From: Selaginella moellendorffii
Lineage: Eukaryota > Plantae > Lycopodiophyta
NCBI RefSeq assembly: GCF_000143415.4
Contig: NW_003314275.1
Coordinates: 124,001-188,000 of the forward strand
Direction of reading: 5' to 3'
Length of the DNA stretch: 64,000 bases
Positions 5,210 through 48,239 of this stretch are shown here, piece after piece. Numbering within the stretch: the stretch's first letter is position 1; each line of letters starts with the position of its first letter. Position numbers and translations under genes: made by a program. The notes below the pieces were generated by a model, which saw nothing but the letters and a program-made list of their open reading frames with translations, was not told the DNA's origin and did not search any database.

Positions 5210-5522
5210 GTGTCCGAGATGGACCCGAGTTGGGGTCCGAAGTTGAGTCCGAAGTGGAGTCCGAGACGGAGTCCGAGGTGGACCCAAGATGGAGTCCGAG
5301 ATGGAGTCCGAGATGGACCCGAGATGGAGTCCGAGATGGACCTAAGATGGAGTCTGAGATGGACCCGAGATGGAGTCTGAGATGGAGTCTGAGATGGAGT
5401 CCGAAATGGACCCGAGATGGAGTCTGAGATGGACCCGAGATGGAGTCCGAGATGGAGTCCGAAGTCGAGACCGAGACCGGGACCGAGACCGAGACCAAGA
5501 TCGGGACCGAGACCAAGATCGG

Positions 5523-5553
<31 letters not shown>

Positions 5554-5637
5554 GCCGAGTTCGAGTCCGAGTCTGAGTCCGAGTCCGAGTCCGAGTCTGA
5601 GTCCGAGTCCGAGTCCGAGTTCGAGTTCGAGTCTGAG
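5210..5637. repeat. LTR-internal minisatellite: GAGATGGAGTCC/GAGATGGACCC 11-12-mers, then (GAGACC)n and (GAGTCC)n
   Basis: Directly visible. The same array, with variable copy number, occurs at ~10918-11372, 20085-20465, 33705-34262, 34772-34885 and, reversed, at 58330-58740. Confidence 0.95.
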
Positions 5638-8600: not shown

Positions 8601-9125
8601 GTCCATGTTAGACTATATGGTAATTGGAAAGCTTGTGAAAGGAGAGACCCTAGCAAGCTAACGAATAGAGTTCCTTGAACGTTCCCCTAGGTAGATAAGT
8701 ACCTAGTCAGCCAAATGTAAATGGTTTATAGAACGTGCGAAATCAGAGTGGCACAGCAGAAGCGTGGTCTTGAAGCTTGCTATGAGGCGAGGCTAACAAG
8801 ATTAGGGAAGTAGTTCCTGAGTGTTCAAAGAAAGGGCTTTGAACGAAAGTCGATGGTTAAGGACTTTCACGCTTATGCATGAACCATGTTATGGTGGCCG
8901 GATGACTTGCTAAGTGAGATTGGCAAGTCGGGGGGAACGAATACCCTAGTTGAAGGAACCAACTTCAAAGGGGTGGCCCATGGGGCCGAGCATGGAGGAG
9001 TCCATGCATGATCATAGGCTTGTCAAGTGAGAGGACTTGGCAGTGCGGAGGAACTAGGTTCCTAAACTGTGATCTGTAGCACGCTTTAAATATAAGTTGG
9101 TGCACCGGTGTGGGGAGTCACGCCA

Positions 9126-17614: not shown

Positions 17615-20370
17615 CTGCACCAGCTCAATTCTTTGCCTACATTGTAGCTTTTGGTCACTTTGCACTTTTGACTGTTCTAGAGCGAGAGAGGACGTCCTTA
17701 TGTGTGTGGCCAGAAGAGAGATGCTACAGTCTGAAAAAGCTGGTTCTTATGTACAGTTTGAAAAGTTGGTCCCCACGAGTCCATTGAGGTTATCCTGGAG
17801 CTTGCACACGAATAGTTCAAATGGACGAGAGGAGAGAAGTATAATATGCACATAGTTTATATTTAACTTTTAACTATTCTCTAATTGTATTAATAAGCCA
17901 GATCTTCAATGTGCTTTTGTTTTTCGCAACTATACAGCTAAAAACCTGTGTGTGGCAAATTCAAGATGACATGCAATTAAAGCTATGATGCAATGGAATG
18001 ATTATCTTGGTTCAAAAAGAATTCCCAAGTTTAAAAGACATTAGGACCACATAGTACTCAAAGTTTTGATAGTGTTGTGTGAATCTGATGTGGAGTGATT
18101 GTTAAATTCTCTCCCTTTTGTGGTTAAGCACGAGAGACTGCTTCAATATTATTGTTCAAGGGCATAGGAGAGCTGGGAGGAAGGCGGCTGCTCTTGAGTT
18201 TCAAGGCGGGAGTTGGGGACTCACTAGCCTTCTTGTCTCAATTAGGCTGCTTTGAAGAGATCTGGCGATGGAATCAATTGCAGACCTGCTGGTTCGGCTT
18301 TTCATGGTTTGCAGACTACAGTCTTTCTAGATCTGCTCAAGTTTGTGTGCCTTTTTATCATGGAGGTACTGCCCATCGCCACAGCTCGAATCTGCCTTTG
18401 CCCTCACCTATCCTCTCCACTTCTTTCTTGAGCCAATCTCCATTCAGATTTTTCGGCAGCGGCCGCGCAGTGGATGGGTGAAAATTTCGTTTCTTTCGAC
18501 CTCACCTGGAAAGTAGAGGCCCTCTGCAAGCATCTATAATCTTTCGTCCCGATTTAGCCTTTGTGTGCTTGCCGCAATTACCATCTTTTTTTAGGCGGCA
18601 TCTGCAGCAGGGGAGCCTTTTATAGTTTATGTGCTTTTTGCGACCTTATTCGTGAGGATATGCTGCTGTGACATCAGGCTTCATGTGTATACTCTGCTCA
18701 CTCACACCAACGGCTTTCGGGAGGTTCTTCATACTTTTGCTTCAATTCGGCGACCGCATGTTGCGAGTGGCTATTCTTCGCGAGTGTGCAGGCTGGGTAT
18801 TTCGCGCTATAGCATTTCGCGCTGACCATTCTATATTGCCTTATTTGGTCAATTTCGACACCTGGTGTAGAAGTTATGTCACGGACCCTGCCGAGCTGCG
18901 TACTGTGCACGGTCTCCTGGATATCTTCTGGGTCGAGCAACGTTTTTGAAAATTTCGACATGTTTTGGTTTCTGCAGATCTGTGTCTTGCATATGTGACC
19001 ATTTTTGTACGCTTCTGCCGTTGGATGCAGCTGCTGCTATCAAGTTTGTTTGGGTGGCACCTGCAGTCTTCACGGGCTCAGCATTATCTTCTGATTGGTG
19101 CAGCGAATTGGACTGTTTCTGCTTTCAACCTGTAGCAGACAGCCTGGGCTTTGATGTGATACTGTGACATTTCGGATTTCAAGCTCGTGTTTTTTTTGGT
19201 GAACAGGTACTTAACATGCAACATGGTTTTCACTTCGTTATTGCAATCTGCTTGTTGCTATCATTGGAGGAGGAAAACAGGTGAGCTTCAGCCATCTGTT
19301 GGTAGTGGCTTTAGGCTACTTCTTCATGTCTTCTTCCATTTTGACGTGCGTATATGGTATGGTGGTCAGTCAGAGGCGGTATGTGGATTTGCATGAAGGA
19401 CTGGAAGAATCTGTTTGTAGTGCAATGATTTGGAGGCTGCTTCATCAACAGATCAGTTTAATAGCCAAAAACAATATTCCTAAGACTTGCTTTGTGTACA
19501 CTATTTGGTTTATACAAGTTTTTGGTGATGTCATTTGGTTTGAACAATGCTCCAGCAACTTTCCAGCGGATTATGGACAAGGTTCTTTATGATATGCCAG
19601 AGGTGACTACTGACTTCATTGATGATGTCTTGATTCACTTGGAGGGGACATGAGAGGAGCATATTCGTGATGTGTGTAAAGTGTTGGATTGGCTACGGGA
19701 TGGTGGTTTAAAGCTGAAGTGGTCGAAATGCGTGTTTGGGTCCAAAGACACAACTTATCTTGGGTACCGTATTTCTCGTGAAGGTTCGCAAGTTGATCTT
19801 GACAAACTTGTGGCTATTTTAAAGCTCCCTACTCCAAAGTGTGTGAATGATGTTGTGAGACATAAATCCTTAAGCCCCAAAGTGGAGCCGAAAGGGTGCC
19901 ATATGGTAGTGGCCGAAGCAAAAGCCAAACAAGTGTAACACGTTTGGACTAAAAGGCTTCAACTTGAAAGGTTGAGAGCGGGAGTGGAACTCCCAACGGA
20001 GTGCTCAAGGAACGAGCATGAAGCGAGCAATAAATGAGGCTCCAAAAAGGGACCCAAAAGGACCAACACATGACACATGGAAGTGTCCGAGATGGACCCG
20101 AGATGGAGTCCGAGGTGGACCCGAGATGGACCCAAGATGGATCCGAGATTGAGTCCGAGGTGGACCCGAGATGGACCCGAGATGGATCCGAGATTGAGTT
20201 CGAGACGGACCCGAGATGGAGTCCTAGATGGACTGAGACGGAGTCCGAGATGGAGTCTGAGATGGAGTCCGAGGTGGACCAAGACGGAGTCCGAGATGGA
20301 GTCCGAGATGGACCCGAGATGGAATTCGAGAAGGACCCGAGATGGAGTCCGAGGTTGAGACCGAGACCGG

Positions 20371-20402
<32 letters not shown>

Positions 20403-23400
20403 TTGGGACCGAGACTGAGGCCGAGGCCGAGTCCGAGTCCGAGTCCGAGTCTGAGTTCGAGTCTTAGAGGGTGAAAGCCCAAAGTGTTCGTCTCCCAGAC
20501 CCTGGGGGGTTTGGTGAGCTCCAAAAGTATAGTAGGGGGAGGACTGCAATGGAGCCAGTTTGGCCAGGAAAGGCCAGTTTGGCCTAGAAAGGCTGTACCT
20601 AGTGTTGGGTGATGAGCTGCCCACTGGGAAGTCCAAGACTAGAGTGAACACAGACCGACAAGCGGGGTAGCTTGGTGAAGTGTTCAAGAGCCGGCTCTAG
20701 TTCCCCCGGGAGATCTACTGGTCGATGCTCCCAGTTCAAGTGTGGGTGGCACTACCTACTTGGATACCAGGCGTGGCTCAATGGAACCTCGCTCTAAACC
20801 CATGGCTAGAGCACCCAAAGGCAGAAGGCGGGGAGAGTATCCACGAGGCTTGCATAAGGCCACGGTGTTCTGAAATGTTGTCCTGAAGGCCCAGACTGTG
20901 GAAAGGAAGAGGAGTAGTGTTCTGGTGTGGTAACCAAGGACACAGTCACATAGTGAGGAAGTCCTAGAGGACAATGAGACTTAGTGGTCAGGCTTGTGGG
21001 CCTTAATCCAGTGGCAGTGTTGGCGAACACGGCCATGGACAGAAAGGGACTTGGTGGGGACCGGAAAGGGGATATTGGGGAAGGTTATTCCCTATGTCTA
21101 GGGGCATCCTAAGGTTGCTAAGGAGTGGATCTAGGATGATCACTCATGGACGAATGGCCCAGTCTTTGAGAGACGGGACTATGATACAGGTGGTGTCAGA
21201 CCACCGATGTGACTAAGGTGAATGGGCATGGGCTTAGCGTAACGGGCTGATATGATGATGGTACCTTGGGGTGTCAGTCATGGGATCGGACACGTGGAGC
21301 ACTTGGACCAAGTGCAAAGGTTGAATGGTGGGGATGCCATTCTCGGGGCTAGCAAGCCCAAGTCCAAAATAGGACTTATGGAGGTTATGAGTGAGACTCC
21401 TCTAAGTGGTTAGAGGTGTGGTTAAGTGACTAAAGTAGAATGGAAAATTTAGTCGCTTACAACTTGGTATTAGAGTTGTTCCTTAGTCTGACTTTTATTG
21501 GTGCTGAAGTATATCACCACTAGTGTTGGCATTGGAAGGTCCTAGGAGTGGGCTTGTCCTTGAGGAGTAGCAAGTCGGGAAGACATGGCTCTCCACTACA
21601 ATTCACGTGTGAACTTGTAGGCAAGGTGGTGGATAGAAAAGGGCCAATGATGGAACGACTTTGGGATCTTGGGAACAGTGTAAAGCTTTCCTCATTGAGT
21701 GAGGATGTGATCCAAATGAGCATTTGATGCAACAAACAAGCTAACATAGTTGTGGTAAACAACTATAGTTGGGATTACGGGAAAGATGCAAACTCCAAAA
21801 CAATAAAGGAGTTATAAGATTACCCTTATATAGTTGAGGCTGGTGCTCATAACTTTGAGACCGGAATTGATGACCATGGGAGGTCGAATACAGAAGAGGA
21901 CACAAGTCTTCAAAATGGTAGCTGGGGCTACCTCTAATAAATGCTGGAACAACCCAAGGAGTTGGGGGTGTACTCGGAAGATGAGTTGGTATTCTCATCA
22001 CATGGATAAGTGGTCCTAAGGGGCAAAAGGTTGCCCCAAAAGAACAAATCAAGTGTTGGAGTAACACTTGCAAAGATGGTCCTTGTGAGTAGGACCTGAA
22101 TACAAGAAGTTGTATTCTAGTGAGCTAATAGCTCAAAGGTAGGACCTCACGGGTCATCGGATGATAAAGTCCAAAAAGCTGGATGACTCAAATAAGAGTC
22201 AAGGAATAATCCTAAGGGATTGGTTGAAACATTTGGACTGAAGTGTATGGTGCCCCATGAGGTATGGGGAGGATGATAAGATCCAAGTATGAGAACAGTA
22301 GATATCTCATTGATGGCAGAATGTGCCATACTAAAATTGTGGGAAAGATGTTCCAAGAAGAAAGCAACTTTGGCCCAGAGTTGGGTGCAAACACTATGGT
22401 GCAGTGCTAACGAATAGTTAGTATGAGGAACAACCATATTGGCCTTGGCAAAGACCTAGACATTAATAAGTAGTGTCATAAGGATAGGCTCGTGGGGCCA
22501 ATGGTGTGGAGACACTAAATGTGCCAAGGTGTGATACCTTGAGGTTATGTTGGTGGGTTCATAAGAACCTCTTGCCAAAGGGAATCCCAACGGAAATGGA
22601 AATGGCATAGCCTAAAGCTAGAAGGCATGTGGTAGAGTGTGGTGACGAAAACAATGATGGAAGTGTGGAAGCACCAGCAATAAGTTATAGGACTTGACAA
22701 CTATGAGGCAACTAAGCAAGAGGGCAGTTAATTGGTTAAACGGGTAAAAGGTAGCTACCCAAGACTTCTTAATGGCATAAAGAAGTAAAATATACCCTTA
22801 TCAAGGATAAGTTGTTTATGTTGCGATATAATGAGTCAATGTCATAAAAGGAAATGCTCATTGTCAAGGAGGCCATCATTGGGACACCCAAACACTCTAG
22901 AACACTAGAAAGTGGTGTTTGGTGTCATGAGGGCAATGGATAATGCCTAAGGGATAAAGTCCCTAACAAATGATGGATAGAAGGTACTATCCAAATGTCC
23001 AAGGTTGCGGTGACGGGAGAAGTCTATCTACCCAAATCGAACAAAAGCTAAAGATGGAATTTTGGCGGGGCTAGTGATGGGCATATGAAGGCCCATAAGT
23101 AGCAACAGTAATCCTAGTATGGGGGATTACAAGGTGAACAAACCCGAATTGAGGAACCACTCCCTAGGTGGTTGAGTAAGTTCATCCTTATGAATACTTG
23201 CCAAGGCATGGTAGAAAGTGCAAAGCTATCTTCCTAGTCTGGAGGAGAATAACAAAAGGAAATGTATGAGGCCAAAAGGCATGTAGTATGGGGATAGAAC
23301 CGAACCATAGGAATTGATAGGCATGACCAAGGGTGGTTATGCAAGTATGGAGTGGAGTGTTACTAGCGACCGGGATGCCATGGAGAGTCTAAAGCATGGG

Positions 23401-24111
23401 ATTGTCCATGTTGGACTATATGGTAATTGGAAAACTTGCGAAAGGAGAGGCCTTAGCAAGCCAAAGAATAGAGTTCCTTGAACGTTCCCCTAGGTAGATA
23501 AGTACTTAGTCAGCCAAGTGTAAATGGTTCATAGGACGCACGAAATCAGAGTGGCGCAGCAGAAGCGTGGTCTTGAAGCTTGCCATGAGGCGAGGCTATC
23601 AAGATTGGGGAAGTAGTTCCCGAGTGTTCAAAAAGAGGGCTTTGAACAAAAGCTGATGGTTAGGGACTTTCACGCTTATGCATGAACTATGTTATGGTGG
23701 CCGAATGACTTGCTAAGTGAGATTGGCAAGTCGGGGGGAACGAATACCCTAGTTGAAGGAGCCAACTTCAAAGGGGTGGCCCAGGGGGCCGAGCATGGAG
23801 GAGTCCATGCATGATCACAAAACATGTCAAGTGAGAGGACTTGGCAGTGCAGAGGAACTAGGTTCCTAAGCTGTGATCTGTAGCGCACTTTAAATATAAA
23901 TTGGTGCACCAGCGTGGGGAGTCACGCCAGGCATCCGGTGTGATGCTGTTCGTAGATGCATATACAGAGGTTGGGTTTGAGTCCCAACCCTCTAGTGCTT
24001 GGGTTCGATGCAACATGTATGTACATTTCTCCAAGTCCCTTAGGGACTGATACAAAAAACAAGAATCCCTTAGCACTATTCACTCAACTATGCTGTCCTG
24101 CAATTCTCTAC

Positions 24112-31640: not shown

Positions 31641-34600
31641 CTTACCAAGCCCTGTGTTGTCGTGGCAGCCGAGGGGTTGCTGCTTCGTGCCCATTGGGGT
31701 CTTGTGGCTTGCTGATTGTCCTTTGATCAGTCCACCTTGGGGTAGGCGAATGCTGAGGCCTCTCCCTCTTGTCCCTCATCCCAGCATGATGGGCTGCCCT
31801 CGAGCTCTTCCTCTGCTCGGTGATTTGTTTAGGTCCATCCTGGGCACAAGAAAATGAGACAACACAGAGATCAGAATAGAGAGCTTCTTCCCTGAGTCTC
31901 GCGGCAGATGCCCCCGCTGACGGTAGCAAGTGTGGGGAGATTGGGCTAAAACGCCAATCATTTTTTTTAGGTCCCTAGTGCTTGGGTTGGAGTCCCAATT
32001 CACTAGGGCGCGGTGATGGTTTGGAATATGAGGACACTCATTTTTCGGTGGTCATGGACTCTTAGTAAAGAGATTAGCTTGGGCACACCACCAAGCGGGG
32101 GATGCCCCAGAGTCGTGATGCACAGTTAAATTGCTTAGAGTGAAAGCTCGGCATATCTAACTTGAATACTTTGGTGCAAAAGACACCAAGGACGTGGTGA
32201 ATGAAATGGGGACACCCAGTCTCAGTTGCTATGGATCCTTGGCCGGAAGGGCTGGCTTGGGCGCACTGCCAAGTGTGGGGGATTCCCCCGAGGTCATAGT
32301 CAACAATTTAAAAGGGTCTGGAAGACCTAGTTCCTATTTGTAGACTTGTTAAGGGGTCAAGATGAGATCACCAGGTGATCTTGTGGCTAAACAAAGACAA
32401 GGTCTTTGTTTGGGTTAAGGATTATAATTCCCAGTTCAAAGTGTTGATTTGAACTATTGATAATGGTGTGACTTGGTCAAGGTGACCAAGTGAGAAGGAT
32501 ATCTAAAGGGAAATCAATTGTGCCAATACGATGGTATAGTAAGTCCAAGAAAGTAGTCTCGGGGAGAGACCCATGGAAGGGTCGCAAAGTTGGGCCGTGG
32601 ACGAAGCCCGTAGTAGAAATTGCTAAAGATACCTACTAAGGGTGAGCACCCACTGGACTTAGCAAAGTAAAGCCTTTGCCATGGAACCAAAAAGATATCT
32701 CGAGAATGAAGGTAGTGATCCTATGTTGTTCAGTGCAACAATCAATGGATAAAAGCAAAAGACTAGTGGCCAAGTGTGGGCCATGGAGTTCATTGAAAGG
32801 AATCCAAATGGCAAAGTTAGGCATGAAACACTAATATGTTGGATGCTAACGGATTGTGAGAAAGGAAGTGTGCTTCCAAGGATGGATTCCTAAATGCTCC
32901 AAGTTGGCAAAGGTGAAAGCTCCAAGGGAGGGAACGGCGAAGTAGCCAAAGGATAGGGCCGTGGATAGCTCTAGCACAACTTACAATGGCTGGAACTTAG
33001 TGCCAAAAGTGGCATAAAATAGAAAGGAGGATGATGGCACCCTCAAGTGGGGAGCTTCCTAGGATGGGAAGTGAAATTGCACAATATGTGCAATGAAAGG
33101 TGTCAAAGATACCAAAGAAATTGATTTCGAGAAGTCAAAATTAAAAGTTCTAAGATGAATTGGTTATGTCAATAGAAGTTGAGACTACTCGAGAATGAGT
33201 AGTGGAATTGAGTTAGAGAAAGTGTCTCTAATAGGTTTAACGAGAACTGAACCAATAAAAGGGGGCAAACCACCCCAGGTGGCCGAATGAGTCTCTATGT
33301 TGGAGAGACTATGCCCTTAGAGGATGGACAAGGCATGGCGAGCCTTCAAGGTCAAACCATAGACAAATATTGGTTGGGTGCCAAGGATAGAAATGGCAAT
33401 ACCTGTGGGTGTTACTTTATAAAAGGGTTTAGGGTTTGATGAGGACATCGAACTTCATCTATGGGTGGTGGAGTTGTGAGACATAAATCCCTAAGCCCCA
33501 AAGTGGAGCCGAAAGGGTGCCACATGGTAGTGGCTGAAACAAAAGCCAAACGAGCGTAACACATTTGGACTAAAAGGCTCCGACTTGAAAGGTTGAGAGT
33601 GGGAGTGGAAGTCCCAACGGAGTGCTCAAGGAACGAGCATGAAGCGAGCAATAAGCGAGGCTCCAAAAAGGGACCCAAAAGGACCAATACATGACACGTG
33701 GAAGTGTCCGAGATGGAGTCCAAGATGGACCCGAGATGGAGTCCGAGATGGAGTCCGAGATGGACCCGAAATGGAGTCCGAGATGGACCTAAAATGGAGT
33801 CTGAGGTGGACCCGAGATGGACCCAAGATGGATCCGAGATGGATCCGAGATTGAGTCCAAGGTGGACCCGAGATGGACCCAAGATGGATCCGAGATTGAG
33901 TCTGAGACGGACCCGAGATGGAGTCCGAGATCGACCGAGACGGAGTCCGAGATGGAGTCTGAGATGGAGTCCGAGATGGAGTCCGAGGTGGACCGAGACA
34001 GAGTCTGAGATGGAGTCCGAGATGGAGTCCGAGGTGGACCAAGACGAAGTCCGAGATGGAGTCCGAGATGGACCCGAGATGGAATATGAGAAGGACCCAA
34101 GATGGAGTCCAAGGTCGAGACCGAGACCGGGACCGAGACCGAGACCGAGACCGAGACTAAGACCGAGATTAGGACCGAGACTAAGGCCGAGGCTGAGTCT
34201 GAGTCCGAGTCCGAGTCCGAGTTTGAGTCCAAGTCTGAGTTTGAGTCTGAGTTCGAGTTTGAGAGGGTGAAAGCCCAAAGCGTTCGTCTCCCAGACCTTG
34301 GGGGGTTTGGTGAGCTCCAAAAGTATAGTAGAGGGAGGACTCCAGTGGAGCCAGTTTGGCCAGGAAAGGCCAGTTTGGCCTAGAAAGGCTGTACCCAGTG
34401 TTGGGTGATGAGCTGCCCACTGGGAAGTCCAAGACTAGAGTGAACACAGACCGACAAGTGGGGTAGCTTGGTGAAGTGTTCAAAAGCCGGCTCTAGTTCC
34501 CCCGGGAGATCGACTGGCTGATGCTCCCAGTCCAAGTGTGGGTGACACTACCTACTTAGATACCAGGCGTGGCTCAACAGAACCTCGCTCTAAGCCCATG

Positions 34601-34773
34601 GCTAGAGCACCCAAAGGCAGAAGGCGAGGAGAGTACCCACAAGGCTTGCGTAAGGCCACGGTGTTCCGAAATGTTGTCCCGAAAGCCCAGACTGTGGAAA
34701 GGAAGAGGAGTAATCCTTTGGTGTAATGACCAAGGATACAATCATGTGGTGAGGAAGTCCTAGAGGACAGTGG

Positions 34774-34809
<36 letters not shown>

Positions 34810-37800
34810 AACCGAGACCGAGATTGGGACCGAGACTGAGGCCGAGGCCGAGTCCGAGTCCGAGTCCGAATCTGAGTTCGAGTCTTAGAGGGTGAAAGCC
34901 CAAAGTGTTCGTCTCCCAGACCCTGGGGGGTTTGGTGAGCTCCAAAAGTATAGTAGGGAGAGGACTGCAGTGGAGCCAGTTTGGCCAGGAAAGGCCAGTT
35001 TGGCCTAAAAAGGCTGTACCCAGTGTTGGGTGATGACCTGCCCACTGGGAAGTCCAAGACTAGAGTGAACACAGACCGACAAGCGGGGTAGCTTGGTGAA
35101 GTGTTCAAGAGCCGGCTCTAGTTCCCCCGGGAGATCGACTGGCCGATGCTCCCAGTCCAAGTGTGGGTGGCACTACCTACTTGGATACCAGGCGTGGCTC
35201 AACGGAACCTCGCTCTAAACCCATGGCTAGAGCACCCAAAGGCAAAAGGCGGGGAGAGTACCCACGAGGCTTGCATAAGGCCATGGTGTTCTGAAATGTT
35301 GTCCTGAAGGCCCAGACTGTGGAAAGGAAGAGGAGTAGTGTTCTGGTGTGGTGACCAAGGACACAGTCACATAGTGAGGAAGTCCTAGAGGACAATGAGA
35401 CTTAGTGGTCAGGCTCGTGGGCCTTGATCCAGTGGCAGTGTTGGCGAACACGGCCCAGGACAGAAAGGGACTTGGTGGGGACCAAAAAGGCAATATTGGG
35501 GAAGGCTATTCCCTATGTCTAGGGGCATCCTAAGGTTGCTAAGGAGTGGATCTAGGATGATCACTCATGGACGAATAGCCCAGTCTTTGAGAGATGGGAC
35601 TGTGATGTAGGTGGTGTCAGACCACCGATGTGACCAAGGTGAATGGGTATGGCCTTAGTGTAACGGGCTGATATGACGGTGGTACCTTGGGGTGTCAGTC
35701 ATGGGATCGGACACGTGGAGCACTTGGACCAAGTGCAAAGGTTGAATGGCGGGGATGCCATTCTCGGGGTTAGCAAGCCCAAGTCCAAAATAGGACTTAT
35801 GGAGGTTGTGAGTGAGACTCCTTCAAGTTGTCAGAAGTGTGGTTAAGTGACTAAAGTAGAATGGAAAATTTAGTCGCTTACAGATGTGCAATGCTTCCTG
35901 GGCAAGGTGTAGTATCTCAGTCGTTTTGTGGATCATCTTTCTAATCGCACTACACTATTGTGAGTGTTGCTGAAGTTATCAACATCATTTTTCATCTGGT
36001 CTTCAGATTGTGAGTGGGCGTTTGTGGATCTCTCTAAACCAATACTTCATTATTGAAGTGGAAGAACCTGGTTGGTCATACTGTTTGGTGGGCTTTGAAG
36101 CTTCAAATATATGATTTTGATGTTATTCATCACCCAGGGAGTTTTATAGCTGATGCTGATGCCCTTTCTCAAGCTCTTCTTCCTTCTCCACTCTCTTCTC
36201 ATGTTTCTGACGAGCCTATTGTTCCAGCATCTGTGGGTTTTCTAAACGAGGATTCTGTGCTGTCAGTGGTTGTTGTACTTGATATTTAGTGTTCACAAGG
36301 CGTAGAGCAAGATCTACTTTCTCTTGATGAGGTTCGTGAGGCTTAAAAGATTGAGCTGTGGATTTGAAGACTTCGAGATATGTTTGAGAATCTTACATCA
36401 CTTGCTGATGACTTGCCCTTCCGGCATTTACATTTTCAATATCGCCTTGAAAATAGCCTTCTTTATTTTGTGGGGATAGATCTTGATGATTATTTACGGT
36501 TGGTGGTGCCTTTTGTCTTTATCTCATGGTTTCTCCATGCTTACCATGATTCTCCTGTTTTAGGTGGGCATATGGGACATCGTTGTGTGACCGAGAAGCT
36601 GCGCAAGTCTTTCTATTGGCCGGAGATGCAACGTGATATTATTCGGTATGTGTGTAGCTGCATTTGGTGCCAAGCTCGTAATACTCCCCCTCGTGTTGCG
36701 GAAGGACGGTTGGAATCAATTGCAATTTCCTATCCATTTGAGTTGGTGGCGTTTGATCTTATAGGACCTTTTCCATAGTCAACTGCTAGTAATGAGTATG
36801 TTATTATTGCTTTTGACTACTTAACTCATTGGGTGGAAGTTGGTGCTTTTGCTAGCGCCTTTGCAACTGCTGTTGAATACTTCCTCCTCAATATAGTGGT
36901 GTTCTAACATTCTTGTCCAGAGCGGATTCTTTCAGATAATGGTTCCGCATTTATGGCTAAGGCATTTCATGTTTTGACGTCTTGGTTGGGGATATGCCAC
37001 ACTTTCACGAGTGCTTATCATCCACAATCAAACAGTCTGGTGGAACAGCTCGTTCGGACATTCAAAAGGATAATTGCGAAGTATGTGAACTTTCAGCATT
37101 CAAATTGGGATGGTTATTTGCCGTCTCTTCGGTATGCCTATGTCACAGAGGTGCAAAGTTCTGTTGGTGCTGCACCATATAAATTCCTATATGGTCATGA
37201 TCCAATATTACCAACAAAGCTGGGTTTACCTTCGCAATTGCCACGAGCTCCCAATGCTAGGTCGTGGGATCAATATTTGACGAGCATTCTTCCACTTGTC
37301 TGAGTAGAGTCTACCGAACACTTAGGCCGCATACAAGTGGGGCAACAACGGTGGTACAACTCATATCATCGTCCACCTATAGAGTACAAAATGGATGATT
37401 TGGTGTTAGTCCATTTTCTCCATCTTATGGTACGTGGTTTATTTAAAGGGCTCATTGCGGAAAGGACCATATCGGGTGTTGCGACAAGTTGGACCACAAA
37501 TTTATGAAGTTTGGCATGATGTCCAACAGGCCGATCCGCCGAAGATTGTGCATGTGCAGCGGTTGAAATGCTTCATACAAAGGGATCAGGAGCAATTAAT
37601 ACCACCTACAGATCCACCGATGCCTCCTCCTAACATTCCTCTAGATCCCGGCTTGTCTACAAAAGAACTCTGACGGCCTTTCATTATTCCGAGAGGAGGG
37701 GATGATGTGAGGGCCAAGTGTATGGCTATGATGCTGTATACTAATATTAACATAGTAGGATTTTGGTAGCCGTCGGATTGGTTTCAATCCGGACCACTCA

Positions 37801-37880
37801 CTCCTATATATAAATTAGGTTTTTGGGCTAACTGATTTGCACATTTTCTATATTCCCTTTCCATATTTTAAGCACTCACA

Positions 37881-40800
37881 ATGTATCTAAATAAATTAGC
37901 TTTTATGATACTTTGGATTTCCATAATAATAATAATAAGCAAAATTTCATTCTTTCTATAGAGCCACAACATTTATGTAATTTTTATTTAAAATATGTTT
38001 TTCATTTATTATTAAGTTTCTATACATATTTCTATATACATATTTATATAGAACTTTAACCCCATAATCTTTATAAGTATAAGCTCTATTATTTTATTAG
38101 CTTTCACATAATAATCTATTCATCCGACGGCTGTCGTTGGTTGAACGGTGACGATTGTTTCAAAAGACCTAATGTTAGGGTTTTTACGGCAGCGAGAGGT
38201 CTTTGTAGCTATGGACGCCTCTTCATCTAGAAAGCGTGGGCGAGAGCCGGGTGAAGAGGGAGAGCAGGAGGAGAAAAAGCGACTTAAAAGAGGTGAGCTT
38301 GCTCGTGTGAAACGTCGTCTGGGGGGAGCAGTTGCAGAAATTGCAGACCTTGAATACCAATTGTTTGAAGCCGGGGAGGATGCTGAACTAAACAAACTAA
38401 AGCAGCAGCTAGCCTCAGAGGAAGTGCGGTTGAGTCAACTCCGGGAGGATAAGTTGAAACTGGAACGCGAGCTCTCTGAAATCCTCCAGCCACCACCTGA
38501 ATCCTTGAAAAGAGTGGAGGGTATTGCCGAATCAGCATTTGCGCAGGAGTACCAAAGAGTTGGGGAATTAGACAACGTGGAGTCGTTGCGTGAGAAGCTG
38601 GAAGAAACAGGAGACATGTGGAAGACGGAGAAGAACATGATAGCACCTGTTGTCACGTTAGTTCAGTCGAGTGGCTGGGGAAAGTCGAGGATTACCTGCG
38701 AGCTTGCGAATTTAGGTGTGTTCGTCATCTACTGCTCATTCGCTTCATCTGACACCGCGTACCCTCCAAGGTCTGCCTTTGCGGACTTCTTCTACACAAA
38801 CGCCGTCAAATTGCTCAGCTCTGGTCCTACGCTTTTGTCGCAGAGCAGGTTCATGCTCTTCTGCATTGACTACTTTGTGTCATGCATCGAGGCTCTTCTG
38901 CAGCTGACTTCCGGGGAGGACCCCATGGATGCCAAGAGGTTCTTGAACGATCTCATGGTTGGGGAGAACTTTTGGGGACTGGTACAGGCGAAGATGGAGA
39001 TAGGAAGCGAAGCCCGGGAGGAGTTTGCGAAGCGCCTTGACGTCGGCCTGAAACAGAAGCCTGGCGAGAACACCAATATCTGGGGCATCTGGGAAAGTAA
39101 GGTGTTTAAGAAGTACAACACGCTTGAAGGTCTACTGTCGAATGTTCCAGCTCCTGCCAAAGGAAAACTGAAGGTCCTGTTTGTCATGGACGAAGCCCGA
39201 TGGTTTGCTTGGCATGCTGATCCGACAACTGTTGCTGCATTTGTTCCTGCAAGGAGAGCTTCCAGGGTGTTGCCTGAAAATGGGAGTGTGTCGGTGATGT
39301 TCACCGACACAAACGGGAGGCTAAACAATTTTGTGCCGGCCAATAAGGCAGATAGTAGCGATCGAGTGGCTGCGGCGGGAAAGCTAGTTGCACATCCAGC
39401 GTACTGCTTTTTCTTCGCACACTTGCCATCGGACGAACAAACAGGTGGCCTTCGGCTTGCTGAAGTTGAAGATCTGGGTCGTCTTTGCGGCTATGGTCGG
39501 CCACTGTGGCAAGCATTGGTGAAGGCTTCCGGAAGTGCAGGTGACGTGCTGCTTTTGGCTGTAGATAAGCTCCTGGGTGGCACTGGTTCGTTCAACAAGT
39601 TTTTGTTTGAAAGAGGTCTATCAGCTGAGGCTTGTCTGGCTACACTGGGCTGCAGAGTATGCATCGACATCAATCCGCATGCCACAATTATCACTGATAT
39701 GGTTGCAAGTCACCTACTTAGCGTGATGTCCATTTCTGATGACCAGACTCTTGTTTGGACGCATTGGGCTACGGAGCCACTGGTTGCAGCGGCTGCAGCA
39801 CAGGTTTTGCGTGCACAAGGGAAGATTGGGAGGACAGGGTGGGAGGAGTGCTTGGAGGCACTTGTAACTGGGATGAAGCGTGGATGGGTTGATCGAGGTT
39901 ATAGGGGCGAGTTGGTTGCACGGGTGCTGCTACTACTTGCAGTGGATAGTCCAGGCAGAAGTTCATGGAAGTGCTTTACTTTTGACGAGCTTTGCCATGG
40001 CTTAAGTGGGAAGTCGCTGTCCGATCTTATTGGAGAAGATGAGCAGAATTCAGCATCTCCGGCCCCCAAGGCTCCAGGTGGTGGAGAAGAAGCGCAGGTG
40101 GAAGTAAACATGCCGCCACCTCCGGCCTCGGCTTTGAAAGTAAACAAAAAATTTCCGGCGTCCCTGTCCAAAGCTCCAGGAGAAAAAGCGCAGGTCAAAG
40201 TAAACACGCCGCCACCTGAGGTGAAGTCGCCATCTCCAACGCTGACGGCCTCGAAAGCTCCAGGTGGAAGTACGCACAATGCTGAAGGGGAAGGGGAAAC
40301 AAAACAAGCAGGTGGCTCTATAGATGGAAGTGGTAAAGAAGAAATCCACAGAAACATGGGTGAAGCCAAGTTTTTTTGCCTGCTATTCAGGAAAACCGAC
40401 TTCCGACTGCAGGACCTCACCGCAAAAGATTTGCTTGAATTTGGAAAGGCTGGCGTGGGAATCATTTGCCGTGAAAATGAATGGGGCATAGACATCGTCA
40501 TCGTTGGGTTCTTTGGTGACACGTTTAGCCTGGAGACGATGACACTCATTTTGGTGCAGGTGAAACACACAGAGAAGCTTGATGTTGATTTAGCATGTGC
40601 TAAATGCTCTCCGGAGTTTTCTCAGATGTTGAGTAGCAGTGCAGGGCCTCAAGGTTGGACTGGGTTGAAGGTGCCATACGCCAGTCTGGTTTTGAATGTG
40701 GCCCATGTGCCTTCCAGCAGTGTTCGTTACAGAACTAGGAAACTTGTCACAGAAGCATTGCTGAAGAAGACACCTGCAAATCAGTCCATGGCAATGGCTC

Positions 40801-42222
40801 TCCATGACGCTCATCCAGAATGCAAAGGCCTTCAGGAATGGACAAAAGGCTATGATGGGGATAGATCACAGCCGGTATTCAAGTCATGGGAACAGTATTT
40901 TGCTTCAGATGATCGTCTCCAACACATTGTGGTCATTCAAGGTACGTTTGTGCTGTTTCCTTTTCAATCACTTGATGTTCTCTTTTGCACTCCAGGTTTG
41001 GATGCATTCTCATCCAAGGACAAAGTGAAAGACCTGGTCGACATCTCTCTGGATTCTACTGCAGACATGAGGAAACTAGAACGAGTTCAGACGAAGTATG
41101 CACATAGAATGTTCGGATGGGTTAAGAACACGGAAATGCGCAAGTGTTTGGCGCCAAAGCTCAGTGTGAAAAAGAGTAAGTAAAACTGAGAATTTTTTTG
41201 AGAAATAATCTGAAATTCCTTCTCCATTGCAGAGGTGCAGATGGAATTATCTTAGGTGGTGAGATTTAAGGACTAGAATCAAGAGCAAGTGCCAATATTT
41301 TAATTATTAAAACTGAATGATTCCTTTTCTATTTTTTTTGCATGTGGTAATGTTGTATTATTCAGGTTTCTGATGGTTTATGTTATAATAGTTAAACAAA
41401 TAATGATAATTGATTAAAAAATTTACAAATTTAATTATAAAATGTTAATTATATTTTAAAATGTGCATCAAAAGTTTTAGGCAAAGCTTTGGTTGAAAGT
41501 ATAGAATATCATTCCAACACTTAGATGTGAAATAGCAAAGGTAACAAACTCACATTCTTAAAGAAAATTGGGTTTAAGAGTTAACTTTTGACATTGCTAG
41601 TAATAAAAGCTATAAGGATATTGAAGTTAATACAAATACAAATAAATGTTATATAGAATGAGCTATATGCTATGATGTGGTTGCCACTAAAGTATCATCA
41701 AGTTTATCATTTTGTCCAATTAGAGTTGCTATTAGTAATATATTATGGATTTAGTTTATGTATTATTGTATTTTAACTGTAACACTACCGAAATATAATT
41801 ATTAAACAATAAGAAAAACTTTGGTGACTATTATAAATTATAACTACAAAAGAAATTTTGAAAAAACTTCAGGATAAGCCATATTCTCTGCTGCTGCTCA
41901 CAAATTTCTCCTCTCTACACTTCATGTTAATTTTTGTTTTTGTCAGGTGTACAAAAAAACCCATTTTCGTTAAAGTGAGACCATTTTGAGTCTCACTTAG
42001 TATATTAATCATTTTCTTAATTTTTATTAATTATATTATCTAAAAACACATATACTTAGATAATTAATTAGGCTTAATTAAAGGAATATTCCAGTTTGAT
42101 TCAAATTATACAGCAAATAATTATTATAAAATAAGAGTTTTTTACAAACAAAACCCACTCATGTGCAAAAAAGTAAATATACCAAAGATATATTTATTAA
42201 AAATGTGAGTATATTACTATAT
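37881..42222 (+). repeat. Segmental duplication unit 1 (upstream spacer + NTPase-nuclease gene + AT-rich 3' flank); partner at 44886-49738
   Basis: Colinear similarity from ATGTAT.TAAATAAATTAGC to ACCAAAGATAT.TTTATTAAAA. Confidence 0.9.
38211..41255 (+). CDS. Crinkler-like NTPase + PD-(D/E)xK nuclease protein (CR-NTPase/CR-REase architecture) with N-terminal NLS and coiled coil, copy 1; predicted introns 40942-40995 and 41176-41232
   Basis: ~3 kb open frame; RKR..KKRLKR; Walker A QSSGWGKS; Walker B VLFVMDE; GRPLW; RGELVARVLLLLA; nuclease-like GIDIVIV...LILVQVK; GT-AG mini-introns conserved between copies. Confidence 0.8.
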
Positions 42223-42348: not shown

Positions 42349-42451
42349 GGAGGTTATATAATTTATAGTTTTGTTGATGGATATGAAACCTTTTTTTTTT
42401 AAATGAAGCTAATAATCAATAATATCTTCAAAAATTACTTAATACCTAATG

Positions 42452-42554
<103 letters not shown>

Positions 42555-42699
42555 AAAAAGATAAAAGCAATAAAAGATATATTAACTTAATAAAAAAATA
42601 AAACTCAGTTGTTTTTAGATATATTAATGTATCTAAATAAATTAGCTTCTATGATACTTTGGACTTCCACAATAATAATAATAATAATAATAATAAGGG

Positions 42700-43663: not shown

Positions 43664-44530
43664 GTACCTTGTGGCTGATAATTTTTCCATGCCTACCATA
43701 ATTCTCCTGTTCTAGGCGGGCATATGGGACATCATCGTGTGACCGAGAAGCTACACAGGTCTTTCTATTGGCTGGAGATGCGACATGATGTCATTCGATG
43801 AAGGACGGTTGGAGTCAATTGCAGTTTTTTGTCCGTTTGAGTTGGTAGCATTTGATCTTATGGGACTTTTTTCATGATTGATTGTTGGCAATGAATATGT
43901 TATTATTGCTTCTGACTATTTGACTCGTTGGGTGGATGTTGGTGCTCTTGCTAGTGCCTCTGCAACTACTATTAGATACTTCCTCCTCAATCGAGTGATG
44001 TTTCAGCATTTTTGTCCGGAGCGAATTCTTTCGGATAATGGTCCCATATTTATAACTAAGGCATTTCATGTTTTGACGTCTCAGTTGGGGATATGCCACA
44101 CTTTCACAATCAAACGGTTTGGTGGAATGGTTTGTTCAGACATTCAAAGGAATGATCGCAAAGTACGTGAACTTTTAGCATTTGGATTGGGATGGTTATT
44201 TGCCATCTCTTTGGTATGCATATGTCACAGGGGTGTAGAGTTTTGTTGGTGCTTCACCATATAAACTTTTATATGGTCATGATCCAATATTACCAATGGA
44301 GTTGGGTTTACCTTCACAATTGCCATGAGCTGCCAATGCTAGGTCGTGGGATTAATATTTGATGAGCATTCTTCCATTTGTCTGAGTAGAGTCTACTGAA
44401 CATTTAGGTTGTGTACAAGTGGGATAACTATGCTACAACTCCCATTATCGTCCACATGCAAAGTACAAAGTGTAGTTTGTTTTCCCCATCTTACAATACG
44501 TGGTTTATCTAAGGGAATCCTTGCTTAGTG
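43664..44530 (+). pseudogene. Gypsy integrase fragment, paralogous to 36500-37460
   Basis: NEYVIIASDYLTRWV, PERILSDNGP; colinear with the upstream integrase, with deletions. Confidence 0.85.
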
Positions 44531-44537
44531 GAAATAA

Positions 44538-44634
<97 letters not shown>

Positions 44635-44812
44635 GTATGTATGTATGTATATATATATATGTATGTATGTATATATATATATGTATATATGTATATATAT
44701 ATATGTATATATGTATATCTATATATGTATATATGTATATGTATATATGTATATATATATATATATGTATATATGTATATATATATATATGTATATATGT
44801 GTGTGTATGTGT
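44538..44812. repeat. Imperfect (TA)n/(TATG)n microsatellite
   Basis: Directly visible; followed by the same flank as the 42454 microsatellite. Confidence 0.98.
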
Positions 44813-45202
44813 TAAAAAAAGATAAATGCAATAGAAGATATATTAAGTTAATAAAAAAATAAAACTCAGTTTTTTAGATATATTAATGTATATAAATAAA
44901 TTAGCTTCTATGATAGTTTGGACTTCCACAATAATAATAATAAGCAAAATTTCATTCTATCTATATAGTCACAACATTTATGTAATTTTTATTTAAATAT
45001 TTTTTTCATTCATTATTAAGTTTCTATACATATTTTTATATACATATTTATATAGAACTTTAACTCCATAATCTTTATAAGTATTAGCTTTCACCTAATA
45101 ATCTATTGATCCGACGGCTGTCGTTGGTTGAACGGTGACGATTGTTTCAAAAGACCTCATGTTAGGGTTTTTGAGAGGTCTTTGTAGGGTTAAGTTCAAG
45201 CT

Positions 45203-48200
45203 ATGGACGCCTCTTCATCTACAAAGCGTGGGCGAGAGCCGGGTGAAGAGGGAGAGCAGGAGGAGAAAAAGCGACTTAAAAGAGGTGAGATTGCTCTTAT
45301 GAACTGGCGTCTGCAGGGGGCACTTGCGGGAATTGCAGACCTTGAATGCAAATTGTGGGAAGCCGGGGAGGATGCCGAACTAAACGAACTAAAGGAGCAG
45401 ATAGCCTCAGAGAAAGTGCGGGCGAGGGGACTCGAGGTGGATAAGTTGAAACTGGAACGCGAGCTCTCTGAAATCCTCAAGCCGCCACGTCAATCCTTGA
45501 AAAGAGTGGAGGGTATTGCCGAATCAGCATTTGCGCAGGAGTACCAAAGAGTTGGGGGATTAGACAACGTGGAGTCATTGCGTGAGAAGCTGGAAGAAAC
45601 AGGAGACATGTGGAAGACGGAGAAGAACATGATAGCACCTGTTGTCACGTTAGTTCAGTCGAGTGGCTGGGGAAAGTCGAGGATTACCTGCGAGCTTGCG
45701 AATTTAGGTGTGTTCGTCATCTACTGCTCATTCGCTTCATCTGGCACCGCGTACCCTCCAAGGTCTGCCTTTGCGGACTTCTTCTACACAAACGCCGTCA
45801 AATTGCTCAGCTCGGGTCCTACGCTTTTGTCGCAGAGCAGGTTCATGCTCTTCTGCATTGACTACTTTGTGTCATGCATCGAGGCTCTTCTGCAGCTGAC
45901 TTCCGGGGAGGACCCCATGGATGCCAAGAGGTTCTTGAACGATCTCATGGTTGGGGAGAACTTTTGGGGACTGGTACAGGCGAAGATGGAGATAGGAAGC
46001 GAAGCCCGGGAGGAGTTTGCGAAGCGCCTTGACGTCGGCCTGAAACAGAAGCCTGGCGAGAACACCAATATCTGGGGCATCTGGGAAAGTAAGGTGTTTA
46101 AGAAGTACAACACGCTTGAAGGTCTACTGTCGAATGTTCCAGCTCCTGCCAAAGGAAAACTGAAGGTCCTGTTTGTCATGGACGAAGCCCGATGGTTTGC
46201 TTGGCATGATGATCCGACAACTGTTGCTGCATTTGTTCCTGCAAGGAGAGCTTCCAGGGTGTTGCCTGAAAATGGGAGTGTGTCGGAGATGTTCACCGAC
46301 ACAAACGGGAGGCTAAACAATTTTGTGCCGGCCAATAAGGCAGATAGTAGCGATCGAGTGGCTGCGGCGGGAAAGCTAGTTGCACATCCAGCGTACTGCT
46401 TTTTCTTCGCACACTTGCCATCGGACGAACAAACAGGTGGCCTTCGGCTTGCTCAAGTTCAAGATCTGGGTCGTCTTTGCGGCTATGGTCGGCCACTGTG
46501 GCAAGCATTGGTGAAGGCTTCCAGAAGTGCAGGTGACGTGCTGCTTTTGGCTGTAGATAAGCTCCTGGGTGGCACTGGTTCGTTCAACGAGTTTTTGTTT
46601 GAAAGAGGACGTCTATCAGATGAGGCTTGTCTGGCTACACTGGGCTGCAGAGTATGCATCGACATCAATCCGCATGCCACAATTATCACTGATATGGTTG
46701 CAAGTCACCTACTTAGCGTGATGTCCATTTCTGATGACCAGACTCTTGTTTGGACGCATTGGGCTACGGAGCCACTGGTTGCAGCGGCTGCAGCACAGGT
46801 CTTGCGTGCACAAGGGAAGATGGGGAGGACAGGGTGGGAGGAGTGCTTGGAGGCACTTGTAACTGGGATGAAGCGTGGATGGGTTGATCGAGGTTACAGG
46901 GGCGAGTTGGTTGCACGGGTGCTGCTACTACTTGCAGTGGATAATCCAGGCAGAAGTTCATGGAAGTGCTTTACTTTTGACGAGCTTTGCCATGGCTTAA
47001 GTGGGAAGTCGCTGTCCGATCTTATTGGAGAAGATGAGCAGAATTCAGCATCTCCGGCCCCCAAGGCTCCAGGTGGTGGAGAAGAAGCGCAGGTGGAAGT
47101 AAACATGCCGCCACCTCCGGCCTCAGCTTTGAAAGTAAACAAAAAATTTTCGGCGTCCCTGTCCAAAGCTCCAGGAGAAAAAGCGCAGGTCAAAGTAAAC
47201 ACGCCGCCACCTGAGGTGAAGTCGCCATCTCCAACGCTGACAGCCTCGAAAGCTCCAGGTGGAAGTACGCACAATGCTGAAGGGGAAGGGGAAACAAAAC
47301 AAGCAGGTGGCTCTATAGATGGAAGTGGTAAAGAAGAAATCCACAGAAACATGGGTGAAGCCAAGTTTTTTTGCTTGCTATTCAGGAAAACCGACTTCCG
47401 ACTGCAGGACCTCACCGCAAAAGATTTGCTTGAATTTGGAAAGGCTGGCGTGGGAATCATTTGCCGTGAAAATGAATGGGGCATAGACATCGTCATCGTT
47501 GGGTTCTTTGGTGACACGTTTAGCCTGGAGACGATGACACTCATTTTGGTGCAGGTGAAACACACAGAGAAACTTGATGTTGATTTAGCATGTGCTAAAT
47601 GCTCTCTGGAGTTTTCTCAAATGTTGAGTAGCAGTGCAGGGCCTCAAGGTTGGACTGGGTTGAAGGTGCCATACGCCAGTCTGGTTTTGAATGTGGCCCA
47701 TGTGCCTTCCAGCAGTGTTCGTTACAGAACTAGGAAACTTGTCACAGAAGCATTGCTGAAGAAGACACCTGCAAATCAGTCCATGACAATGGCTCTCCAT
47801 GACGCTCATCCGGAATGCAAAGGCCTTCAGGGATGGACAGAAGGCTATGATGGGGATAGATCACACCCGGTCTTCAAGTCATGGGAACGGTATTTTGCTT
47901 CAGATGATCGTCTCCAACACATTGTGGTCATTCAAGGTAATTTCATTTTCAATCAGTTGATGTTCTCTTTTGCTCTCCAGGTTTGGATGCATTCTCATCC
48001 AAGGACGAAGTGAAAGACCTGGTCGACATCTCTCTGGATTCTACTGCAGACATGAGGAAACTAGAACAAGTTCAGAAGACGCATGCACATAGAATGTTCG
48101 GATGGGTTAAGAACACGGGAATGCGCAAGTGTTTGGAGCCAAAGCTCAGCGTGAAAAAGAGTAAGTAAAGCTGAGAATTTTTTGAGAAATAATCTGAAAT

Positions 48201-48239
48201 TCTTTCTCCATTGCAGAGGTGCAGATGGAATTATCTTAG
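45203..48239 (+). CDS. Crinkler-like NTPase + PD-(D/E)xK nuclease protein, copy 2; predicted introns 47937-47980 and 48161-48216
   Basis: Near-identical to copy 1 outside the N-terminus; the apparent frameshift at ~47940 is removed by splicing CAAG|GTAA..CCAG|GTTTGG; ends ..VKKKVQMELS*. Confidence 0.75.

Follow-up and report, generated by a model that had tools for sequence, protein, structure and literature searches.

How can two neighbouring genes stay almost identical along most of their length and differ strongly in one short piece of a single exon? This question is raised by a tandem gene pair in a 64,000-nucleotide stretch of the Selaginella moellendorffii genome (contig NW_003314275.1, positions 124,001 to 188,000), referred to here as the window and numbered from its first letter. 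Copy A (SELMODRAFT_410963, protein P0001; ATG at 38211) and copy B (SELMODRAFT_410964, P0021; ATG at 45203) lie about 7 kb apart on the forward strand, within collinear duplicated units that each run from a Ty3/gypsy relic through the gene to a downstream segment. The window DNA is nuclear, and a word search with exon 1 of copy A retrieved SELMODRAFT proteins and one metagenomic sequence only. No mention of either locus was found in the literature searched. Both copies read, in order, as a nuclear localization signal (NLS)-like motif, a predicted helical hairpin, an AAA+/STAND-like P-loop nucleoside triphosphatase (NTPase), a disordered linker, a probable PD-(D/E)xK domain and a helical tail. 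They are about 99% identical apart from the 70-codon tip of the hairpin, where a third of the residues differ; recognition modules are known to show such a pattern. To our judgement there is about an even chance that this tip is an adaptive segment escaping gene conversion on a chassis that evolves in concert.

Divergence is concentrated in one patch of exon 1

Over positions 38295-38504 the two copies differ at 33 nucleotides, comprising 14 transitions and 19 transversions. In sliding windows of 150 nt, identity is 92-98% at 37861-38297, an interval taking in promoter-proximal DNA, the 5′ untranslated region and the first 29 codons; it drops to 81-89% at 38298-38505 and then rises to 98-100% at 38520-40850. 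The Jukes-Cantor distance is 0.176 for the patch and 0.0098 for the body, with intermediate values for the proximal flanks (0.051 and 0.056), the 3′ coding end (about 0.05) and the distal downstream flank (0.096); the upstream retrotransposon relic reaches 0.171. The homogenised tract around the gene is 94.9% identical overall and about 99% identical once the patch and the ends are excluded.

At the codon level, codons 27-98 carry 23 replacement and 4 silent differences, whereas the much longer stretch of codons 99-910 carries 18 replacement codons, one 1-codon indel and 12 silent changes, and exon 2 another 7 replacement codons and 1 silent. Replacements are strongly clustered in the patch (nonsynonymous divergence dN, patch versus body, Fisher p=2e-20). 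A first-pass annotation, made from the letters of the window, had counted about 24 differences in the first 97 or so residues and about 26 in the remainder. The codon alignment reproduces both figures, the 24 being made up of residue 7 and a further 23 from positions 30 to 97, and the remainder being the 18 replacements, the indel and the 7 in exon 2. Its estimate of about three synonymous changes in the block was of the right order; the purely synonymous codons of the N-terminal header number four (39, 42, 58 and 94).

The C-terminal tail (residues 855-970; 40775-41175 versus 47770-48160) is a second, weaker variable region between the copies, with 12 replacement and 3 silent changes (dN 0.045, synonymous divergence dS 0.043; core dN 0.0075, dS 0.019).

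Variable residues fall mostly at surface positions of a predicted hairpin

Protein searches and folds took the exons singly: they used exon 1 (residues 1-910), whole or in part, and exon 2 was analysed separately. AlphaFold2 modelling on a 74-sequence alignment (predicted local distance difference test score (pLDDT) 82, predicted template-modelling score 0.80) gives the header a pair of long helices, with hydrophobic residues in a heptad pattern and a short loop between them, as in an antiparallel coiled-coil hairpin; pLDDT is 78-91 at residues 21-90. By VIA-align, residues 10-94 match solved antiparallel helical hairpins, including the ESCRT-III hairpin, SMC arms, prefoldin and Rop-like proteins, at Z 10-11 and a root-mean-square deviation (rmsd) of 1-2.5 Å. 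So predicted, the fold is a generic one and carries no functional implication.

The differences between A and B fall at residues 30-52, 62-79 and 93-97, and the hairpin base (17-29 and 84-92) is conserved. In the model, the stretches 30-52 and 62-79 oppose each other in the tip-proximal half of the hairpin, and the hairpin geometry suggests that the tip is exposed. Four changes occupy core (a/d) positions of the heptad, and all of them are hydrophobic-to-hydrophobic (L/I, V/M, L/I and L/A), while changes at surface positions are mostly radical and charge-altering. Across the 17 header-bearing sequences of this family of about 18 paralogues the same division holds, with an entropy of 0.40 at a/d versus 0.75 at b, c, e, f and g (Mann-Whitney p=0.02), and L37, I44, L47, L63, L77 and L84 are invariant. 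The heptad pattern is thus retained, as the first-pass annotation had supposed. Header indels in these sequences are confined to the tip loop: P0025 (SELMODRAFT_422090) has a 5-residue duplication, EEAGE, exactly there, and A, B and P0008 share a 3-residue LN(K/E) insertion adjoining it. Just ahead of the variable residues, positions 8-26 fit the classical bipartite consensus and may act as an NLS.

Gene conversion accounts for most of the contrast

By the Nei-Gojobori method (NG86), the patch (codons 27-98) yields dN of 0.197 (28.5 changes over 164.8 sites) and dS of 0.094 (4.5 over 51.2 sites), giving a dN/dS ratio (omega) of 2.1, compared with dN of 0.0097 and dS of 0.0216 for the body. The silent divergence of the patch is 4.4 times that of the body (p=0.036) and equals the distance of the distal downstream flank. 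Since patch dS matches this flank and exceeds body dS, most of the contrast comes from homogenisation of the remaining unit by gene conversion on both sides of the patch. Homogenisation occurred at least twice, the proximal parts differing by about 5% and the body by about 1%. The first-pass annotation had named conversion of the 3′ part alone as the explanation that would undo its selective reading; conversion does supply most of the contrast, but it acted on both sides of the patch and not on the 3′ part alone.

The upstream flank was dropped as a neutral clock: it is a hypermutable retrotransposon relic, in which 111 transitions stand against 10 transversions. The neutral comparison relied instead on transversions and on the downstream flank. 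We also considered adenine-directed mutagenesis of the kind caused by diversity-generating retroelements, which is ruled out by a patch substitution spectrum without adenine specificity.

The patch may be more than a neutral remnant

If conversion produced most of the contrast, the patch could simply be a coding piece that recent conversion tracts missed, under relaxed constraint, with omega about 1 and no adaptive role. We regard this as possible but doubtful. Its silent divergence, equal to that of the distal flank and well above that of the body, is in its favour, as are some allelic pairs with identical headers, and a high mismatch density can itself block heteroduplex extension. Moreover, pairwise maximum likelihood under the Goldman-Yang model, with the transition/transversion parameter kappa free, gives a patch omega of 2.63 and a likelihood-ratio test (LRT) against 1 of p=0.057. 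When kappa is instead held at 3.57, the estimate from the body, omega rises to 3.3 (p=0.014). The point estimates thus lie at 2.1-3.3, and omega of 0.75 or less is rejected by profile likelihood (twice the log-likelihood difference, 6.4). Surface heptad codons taken alone give an omega of 3.5-4.5, and patch and body are unlike in their ratio of replacement to silent changes (p=0.02).

Transversions also argue against a neutral remnant. The patch has 0.090 per site versus 0.013-0.035 in the non-coding flanks (Fisher p from 0.0045 to 2e-7), a density 2.6-7 times that of any flank, which suggests that the patch is more than merely an unconverted neutral piece. In addition, the a/d core and helix continuity are kept, and neither stops nor frameshifts occur, in all 17 header-bearing sequences, indicative of a maintained structure rather than decay. 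Lastly, converted DNA brackets the patch on both sides.

Several points weigh against an adaptive tip. The selection tests draw on a single DNA pair, A versus B; omega of 1 is not rejected at the 5% level with kappa free, the 95% interval being about 1-9, and patch dS is based on about 4.5 events. The patch was chosen post hoc for looking divergent, which biases omega upward, and six of its codons carry two changes each, multi-nucleotide events being able to inflate such tests. In the putative allelic pairs P0003/P0010, P0006/P0012 and P0002/P0007, header divergence does not exceed core divergence. Rapid change is thus no general property of header branches, and would be episodic or driven by exchange. 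On the protein side, the nuclease fold of the chassis has weak structural matches. Taken together, diversifying selection with segment shuffling in the patch is likely, not proven. For the diversifying selection suggested by the first-pass annotation, the header point estimate lies above 1, and the excess is borderline for this one pair.

Header segments recombine among paralogues

Within the family as a whole, residues 27-50 are the hypervariable part, and helix 2 is conserved except within the A/B gene cluster. Header protein distances level off at 0.25-0.40 whatever the core distance (0.03-0.12), with a median header-to-core ratio of 3.9, and in many members the nearest neighbour by header is not the nearest by core. 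P0003 and P0010, for example, have identical headers and cores 6.5% different, while A and P0022 have cores 1% different and headers 21% different. The chassis evolves in concert, with header types persisting as paralogue-specific tags. In distant Selaginella subfamilies quite different N-terminal pieces precede the same conserved core, which fits a modular, replaceable header.

P0022 and P0008, encoded on another scaffold than A and B, allow the exchange to be followed within the header. A goes with P0022 at informative sites 30, 41, 43 and 49, B goes with P0022 at 75, 76, 79 and 97, and a tip insertion of three residues unites A, B and P0008; B and P0022 have four derived helix-2 residues in common. 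These incompatible partitions fall in runs (p=0.015), indicative of recombination or short-tract conversion inside the header. The header swapping proposed at first pass is supported in this form, with header and core histories decoupled.

Could one or both headers then have been pasted in from older paralogues by short-tract conversion, so that the divergence is ancient and an omega above 1 is not needed? The run structure just described and the disagreement between header and core neighbours point that way, as do P0022, A-like at residues 28-49 and B-like at 50-83, and P0008, identical to B at 39-73 and A-like or consensus-like at 75-97. But eight residues of A (Q50, F52, K62, Q65, L67, E71, L74 and R78) and several of B, including N34, W35, K93 and R96, occur in no other header-bearing family sequence, and BLASTN and TBLASTN searches of the window retrieve A and B only, with no third copy, header fragment or donor. 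Furthermore, codons 50-79 hold 15 replacement changes and 1 silent change, where import predicts silent differences in proportion. We therefore hold wholesale import to be improbable. Haplotype mis-assembly of a heterozygous plant, or sequencing error, is very improbable indeed: the public S. moellendorffii assembly holds both haplotypes and related genes lie on a second scaffold, but the 7-kb units are collinear within one contig with distinct flanks, intron lengths and intergenic repeats, both copies match separate database proteins exactly in the header, and the differences are in-frame point changes.

The reading we favour, an adaptive tip on a concertedly evolving chassis, may be put together as follows. 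Gene conversion holds the two copies near-identical along the chassis as a whole, in the first 29 codons and in promoter-proximal DNA, and the distal hairpin (codons 30-97) has escaped it, with silent divergence as high as that of the oldest collinear flank. There the patch has gained amino-acid changes about 2-3 times as fast as silent ones; most fall on solvent-facing positions of the heptad, the hydrophobic core being kept, and short header segments recombine among paralogues and between scaffolds. The tip might then be a specificity surface, for recognition of a partner or ligand or for selective self-association, that governs NTPase-dependent nuclease activation in the nucleus. Selection would favour unlike tips on neighbouring copies and purge convertants that equalise them.

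Whichever way the tip evolved, the locus is a clean natural case of concerted evolution with local escape inside one exon. It also makes a point of method: a block may look 'hypervariable' mostly because its surroundings have been homogenised, and its dS should be compared with that of the flanks before selection is invoked.

The chassis combines an NTPase with a probable nuclease

Conserved motifs give the NTPase good support, and its fold matches agree with them. Walker A (GWGKS, residues 155-159, 38673-38687) and Walker B (VLFVMDE, residues 322-328, 39174-39194) are as expected of a P-loop NTPase, with G157 and K158 at least 90% conserved and D327 and E328 invariant among 74 homologues. Fold comparison aligns the region with Avs3 (Z 9.1, 259 residues aligned, rmsd 5.0), ORC5 (Z 8.9, 165 aligned, rmsd 4.1), RdrA and p97, and Foldseek returns CC-NLR (coiled-coil nucleotide-binding leucine-rich repeat receptor) resistosomes, PABY2304 and ORC/Cdc6 at E of 2.5e-3 to 1e-2; these fold scores lie in the tool's 'middling' range and are consistent with the fold.

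The C-terminal nuclease is probable but unconfirmed, by motif and topology. In its model (pLDDT 88), D761 starts strand 2 (762-767) and Q783-V-K785 ends strand 3 (777-785), so that in the predicted structure an acid at strand 2 and a (D/E/Q)xK in strand 3 stand where a PD-(D/E)xK enzyme has them; D761 is invariant and QVK(N) is the consensus among the 74 homologues. Fold matches are weak (Z up to 3.6). Some 17 of 41 are restriction-endonuclease (REase)-fold proteins, among them Lamassu LmuACB, McrBC, HamA, MspJI, Bse634I, BsmI, EcoT38I, NucS and a Cas4-family protein, and the top Foldseek matches are YopJ-type enzymes at E of about 1e-2. The first-pass picture of a variable header on a conserved NTPase-nuclease chassis therefore stands for the header and the NTPase, while its nuclease rests at the level of motif and topology.

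Motifs conserved in the 74-sequence alignment are VQSSGxGKSR, LFxFDEA, GRPLW, RGELVAR and GxD...QVKN. Pfam, NCBIfam and PADLOC scans of the family proteins gave zero matches, and PDB sequence-profile searches nothing significant. With HMMER, 973 of 1.84 billion representatives proved related at E<=1e-3, the similarity lying mostly in residues 100-610 and in the C-terminal domain. Among those identified are other Selaginella subfamilies, a tandem cluster of Adiantum nelumboides, a basidiomycete protein and metagenomic eukaryotic contigs. A profile word search returned the same Selaginella set and one basidiomycete protein, with no named family, and the ESM-Atlas neighbours are fungal hypothetical proteins. 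A and B belong to a lycophyte and fern gene family without a Pfam match.

The Adiantum nelumboides homologues P0028, P0172, P0173 and P0174 stand in tandem on one 425-kb contig and are 38% identical to the Selaginella protein. Two of these homologues are 99% identical, and 4 of their 10 differences, together with a 2-residue indel, fall at residues 61-83, upstream of the NTPase core. In a distant Selaginella subfamily, the annotation of P0178 (SELMODRAFT_422858) joins an N-terminal extension, F-box and beta-propeller-like, to the NTPase-nuclease chassis; the fusion may be genuine or may come from gene models merged into one.

Gene models and other features of the window

Coordinates are collected in Table 1. 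Both genes are intact. Copy B was considered as a frameshifted pseudogene and this was ruled out: the 10-nt length difference sits inside a GT..AG intron, and the early frameshift or stop is only apparent, because the intron is 44 nt long in B (54 nt, and in frame, in A) and splicing restores the frame. Downstream of it come another short intron and the small exon 3. The header and all compared body positions of copy A are identical to P0001, except for a 22-residue piece spliced from the database model, which for exon 3 of A uses an alternative acceptor near 41367.

The spliced piece concerns a 66-nt in-frame GT..AG segment (40560..40625 on the forward strand in A, 47555-47620 in B) that encodes residues 784-805, among them the lysine of the conserved QVK motif. 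In most of the family's database models it is spliced out, in P0002 and P0009 it is kept, and its protein sequence is conserved in the fern homologue P0028. Either the annotation is wrong to call it an intron, or it is an exitron yielding a nuclease-dead isoform.

Table 1 Features of the tandem gene pair and its surroundings (positions in the window).
Feature	Position	Strand	Basis or remark
Ty3/gypsy-type retrotransposon relic, 5′ end of duplicated unit	36531..37400	+	Pfam Integrase_H2C2, rve, RVT_1; partner 43683-44470
Homogenised tract of unit A	37880..41517	+	BLASTN and sliding identity; partner 44885-48486
Gene A exon 1 (residues 1-910 and first base of split codon)	38211..40941	+	Open reading frame and translation
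Bipartite NLS-like motif (KR, 12 residues, KKRLK; residues 8-26)	38232..38288	+	Family alignments; conserved
Predicted antiparallel two-helix hairpin (helix 17-53, loop EAGED 54-58, helix 59-92)	38259..38486	+	AlphaFold2
Hypervariable patch, copy A (codons 30-97; distal hairpin and PPP turn)	38298..38501	+	84.7% BLASTN identity to B over 38290-38505
AAA+/STAND-like P-loop NTPase region with helical modules (residues 100-620)	38508..40070	+	Motifs and fold
Pro/Ala/Lys-rich linker, predicted disordered (residues 623-706)	40077..40328	+	pLDDT <50; indel-rich in family
Probable C-terminal PD-(D/E)xK-like domain	40329..40940	+	Motif and topology; D761 at 40491-40493, Q783-V-K785 at 40557-40565
Intron 1 of A, 54 nt, GT..AG	40942..40995	+	A/B alignment; B counterpart 44 nt
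Exon 2 of A	40996..41175	+	Matches C-termini of database models
Exon 3 of A (KVQMELS, stop)	41233..41255	+	Sequence versus model C-termini
Gene B exon 1	45203..47936	+	SELMODRAFT_410964 (P0021)
Hypervariable patch, copy B (codons 30-97)	45290..45493	+	A/B alignment
Intron of B, 44 nt	47937-47980	+	A/B alignment
Exon 2 of B	47981..48160	+	Follows 44-nt intron
Exon 3 of B	48217..48239	+	By alignment offset from A

The two copies of the Ty3/gypsy relic are 15% divergent, and their changes, the 111 transitions and 10 transversions mentioned above, run in both directions, a pattern that looks like deamination of methylated cytosines in silenced repeats. Low-complexity arrays of 8-14-nt periodicity occupy 42379-42600, between the copies, and 44479-44880, directly upstream of copy B, and lie where the duplicated units cease to be collinear. 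Elsewhere in the window, a repeated unit of more than 1.5 kb is present in four to five copies (about 4980-6640, 10690-12380, 19850-21470 and 33470-35890) at 77-97% identity. It contains 12-nt and 23-nt tandem repeats, with larger 91%-identical blocks at 6528-8854 versus 21357-23657, and is probably a second tandem gene or transposon family.

Comparison with known systems

If the tip is a specificity determinant, the pair offers a compact, repeat-free model of how a recognition surface diversifies on a conserved NTPase-nuclease engine, and would hint that seed-free plants have an immune or selfish-gene system beyond the NLR paradigm. More speculatively, and in our estimate unlikely as a whole, A and B could represent nuclear NTPase-nuclease proteins of conflict or immunity that form an undescribed class in lycophytes and ferns, with specificity in the hairpin tip and not in LRR (leucine-rich), TPR (tetratricopeptide) or WD repeats, the chassis being kept uniform by concerted evolution and the tips kept apart by selection; the 66-nt segment, whose splicing takes away the catalytic lysine, might then give a nuclease-dead regulatory isoform.

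Among known systems, the CR (Crinkler/RHS-type) effectors resemble the pair in domain order. PMC5289972, summarising Zhang et al. 2016, describes their C-terminal module as a P-loop NTPase with a helix-turn-helix and an REase domain, and PMC5289972 and PMC12957317 report CR proteins in land plants and free-living eukaryotes. The order described for these effectors, a P-loop NTPase and then a restriction-endonuclease-type domain, is also the one read for A and B, with their probable nuclease, and nuclear targeting, to which the NLS-like motif of A and B would correspond, would be shared. In contrast to the Crinklers (CRNs), which join a conserved header to varying C-termini, A and B join a varying header to a conserved chassis, and their N-terminus has no secretion-signal-like stretch. 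The Crinkler/ubiquitin-like header (PF20147, LxLFLAK-type) was absent from A, B and 63 wider homologues by Pfam scan. As a lead only, one ESM-Atlas neighbour cluster has PF20147 in 19% of its members (score 0.89). The search matches included no named CRN; no direct comparison with a reference CRN sequence was made.

Plant CC-NLRs such as the ZAR1, Sr35 and NRC resistosomes likewise place an N-terminal helical or coiled-coil element before a STAND-type NTPase, and are the top Foldseek matches of the NTPase region (E of 2.5e-3 to 6e-3, probability 0.93-0.98), though with TM-scores (template-modelling scores) of only about 0.2. They share with A and B tandem arrays, gene conversion and a localised hypervariable segment. 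Unlike them, A and B have no NB-ARC Pfam match and no LRR. A search for a C-terminal LRR, TPR or WD40 sensor and an NB-ARC or NACHT signature gave no Pfam match, the C-terminus being a disordered linker and a compact alpha/beta domain. The variable part is the N-terminal hairpin in A and B, as opposed to the C-terminal repeat sensor of CC-NLRs, and the presumed effector is a nuclease-like domain rather than a membrane-inserting coiled coil.

In bacteria, Avs3, RdrA and BrxC, together with the Lamassu, Hachiman and McrC nucleases, couple an NTPase switch to a nuclease, as we propose for A and B. Avs3 aligns with the NTPase region as given above, and the weak C-terminal matches are enriched in defence-type PD-(D/E)xK nucleases. 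A and B differ from the bacterial STAND-nuclease defence proteins in having no PADLOC or NCBIfam match, another domain order and no TPR sensor, and in being eukaryotic nuclear genes with introns. The likeness to these proteins and to CC-NLRs is architectural only, and the immune-receptor or toxin-antidote role that it brings to mind for the tandem pair is to be read as an analogy.

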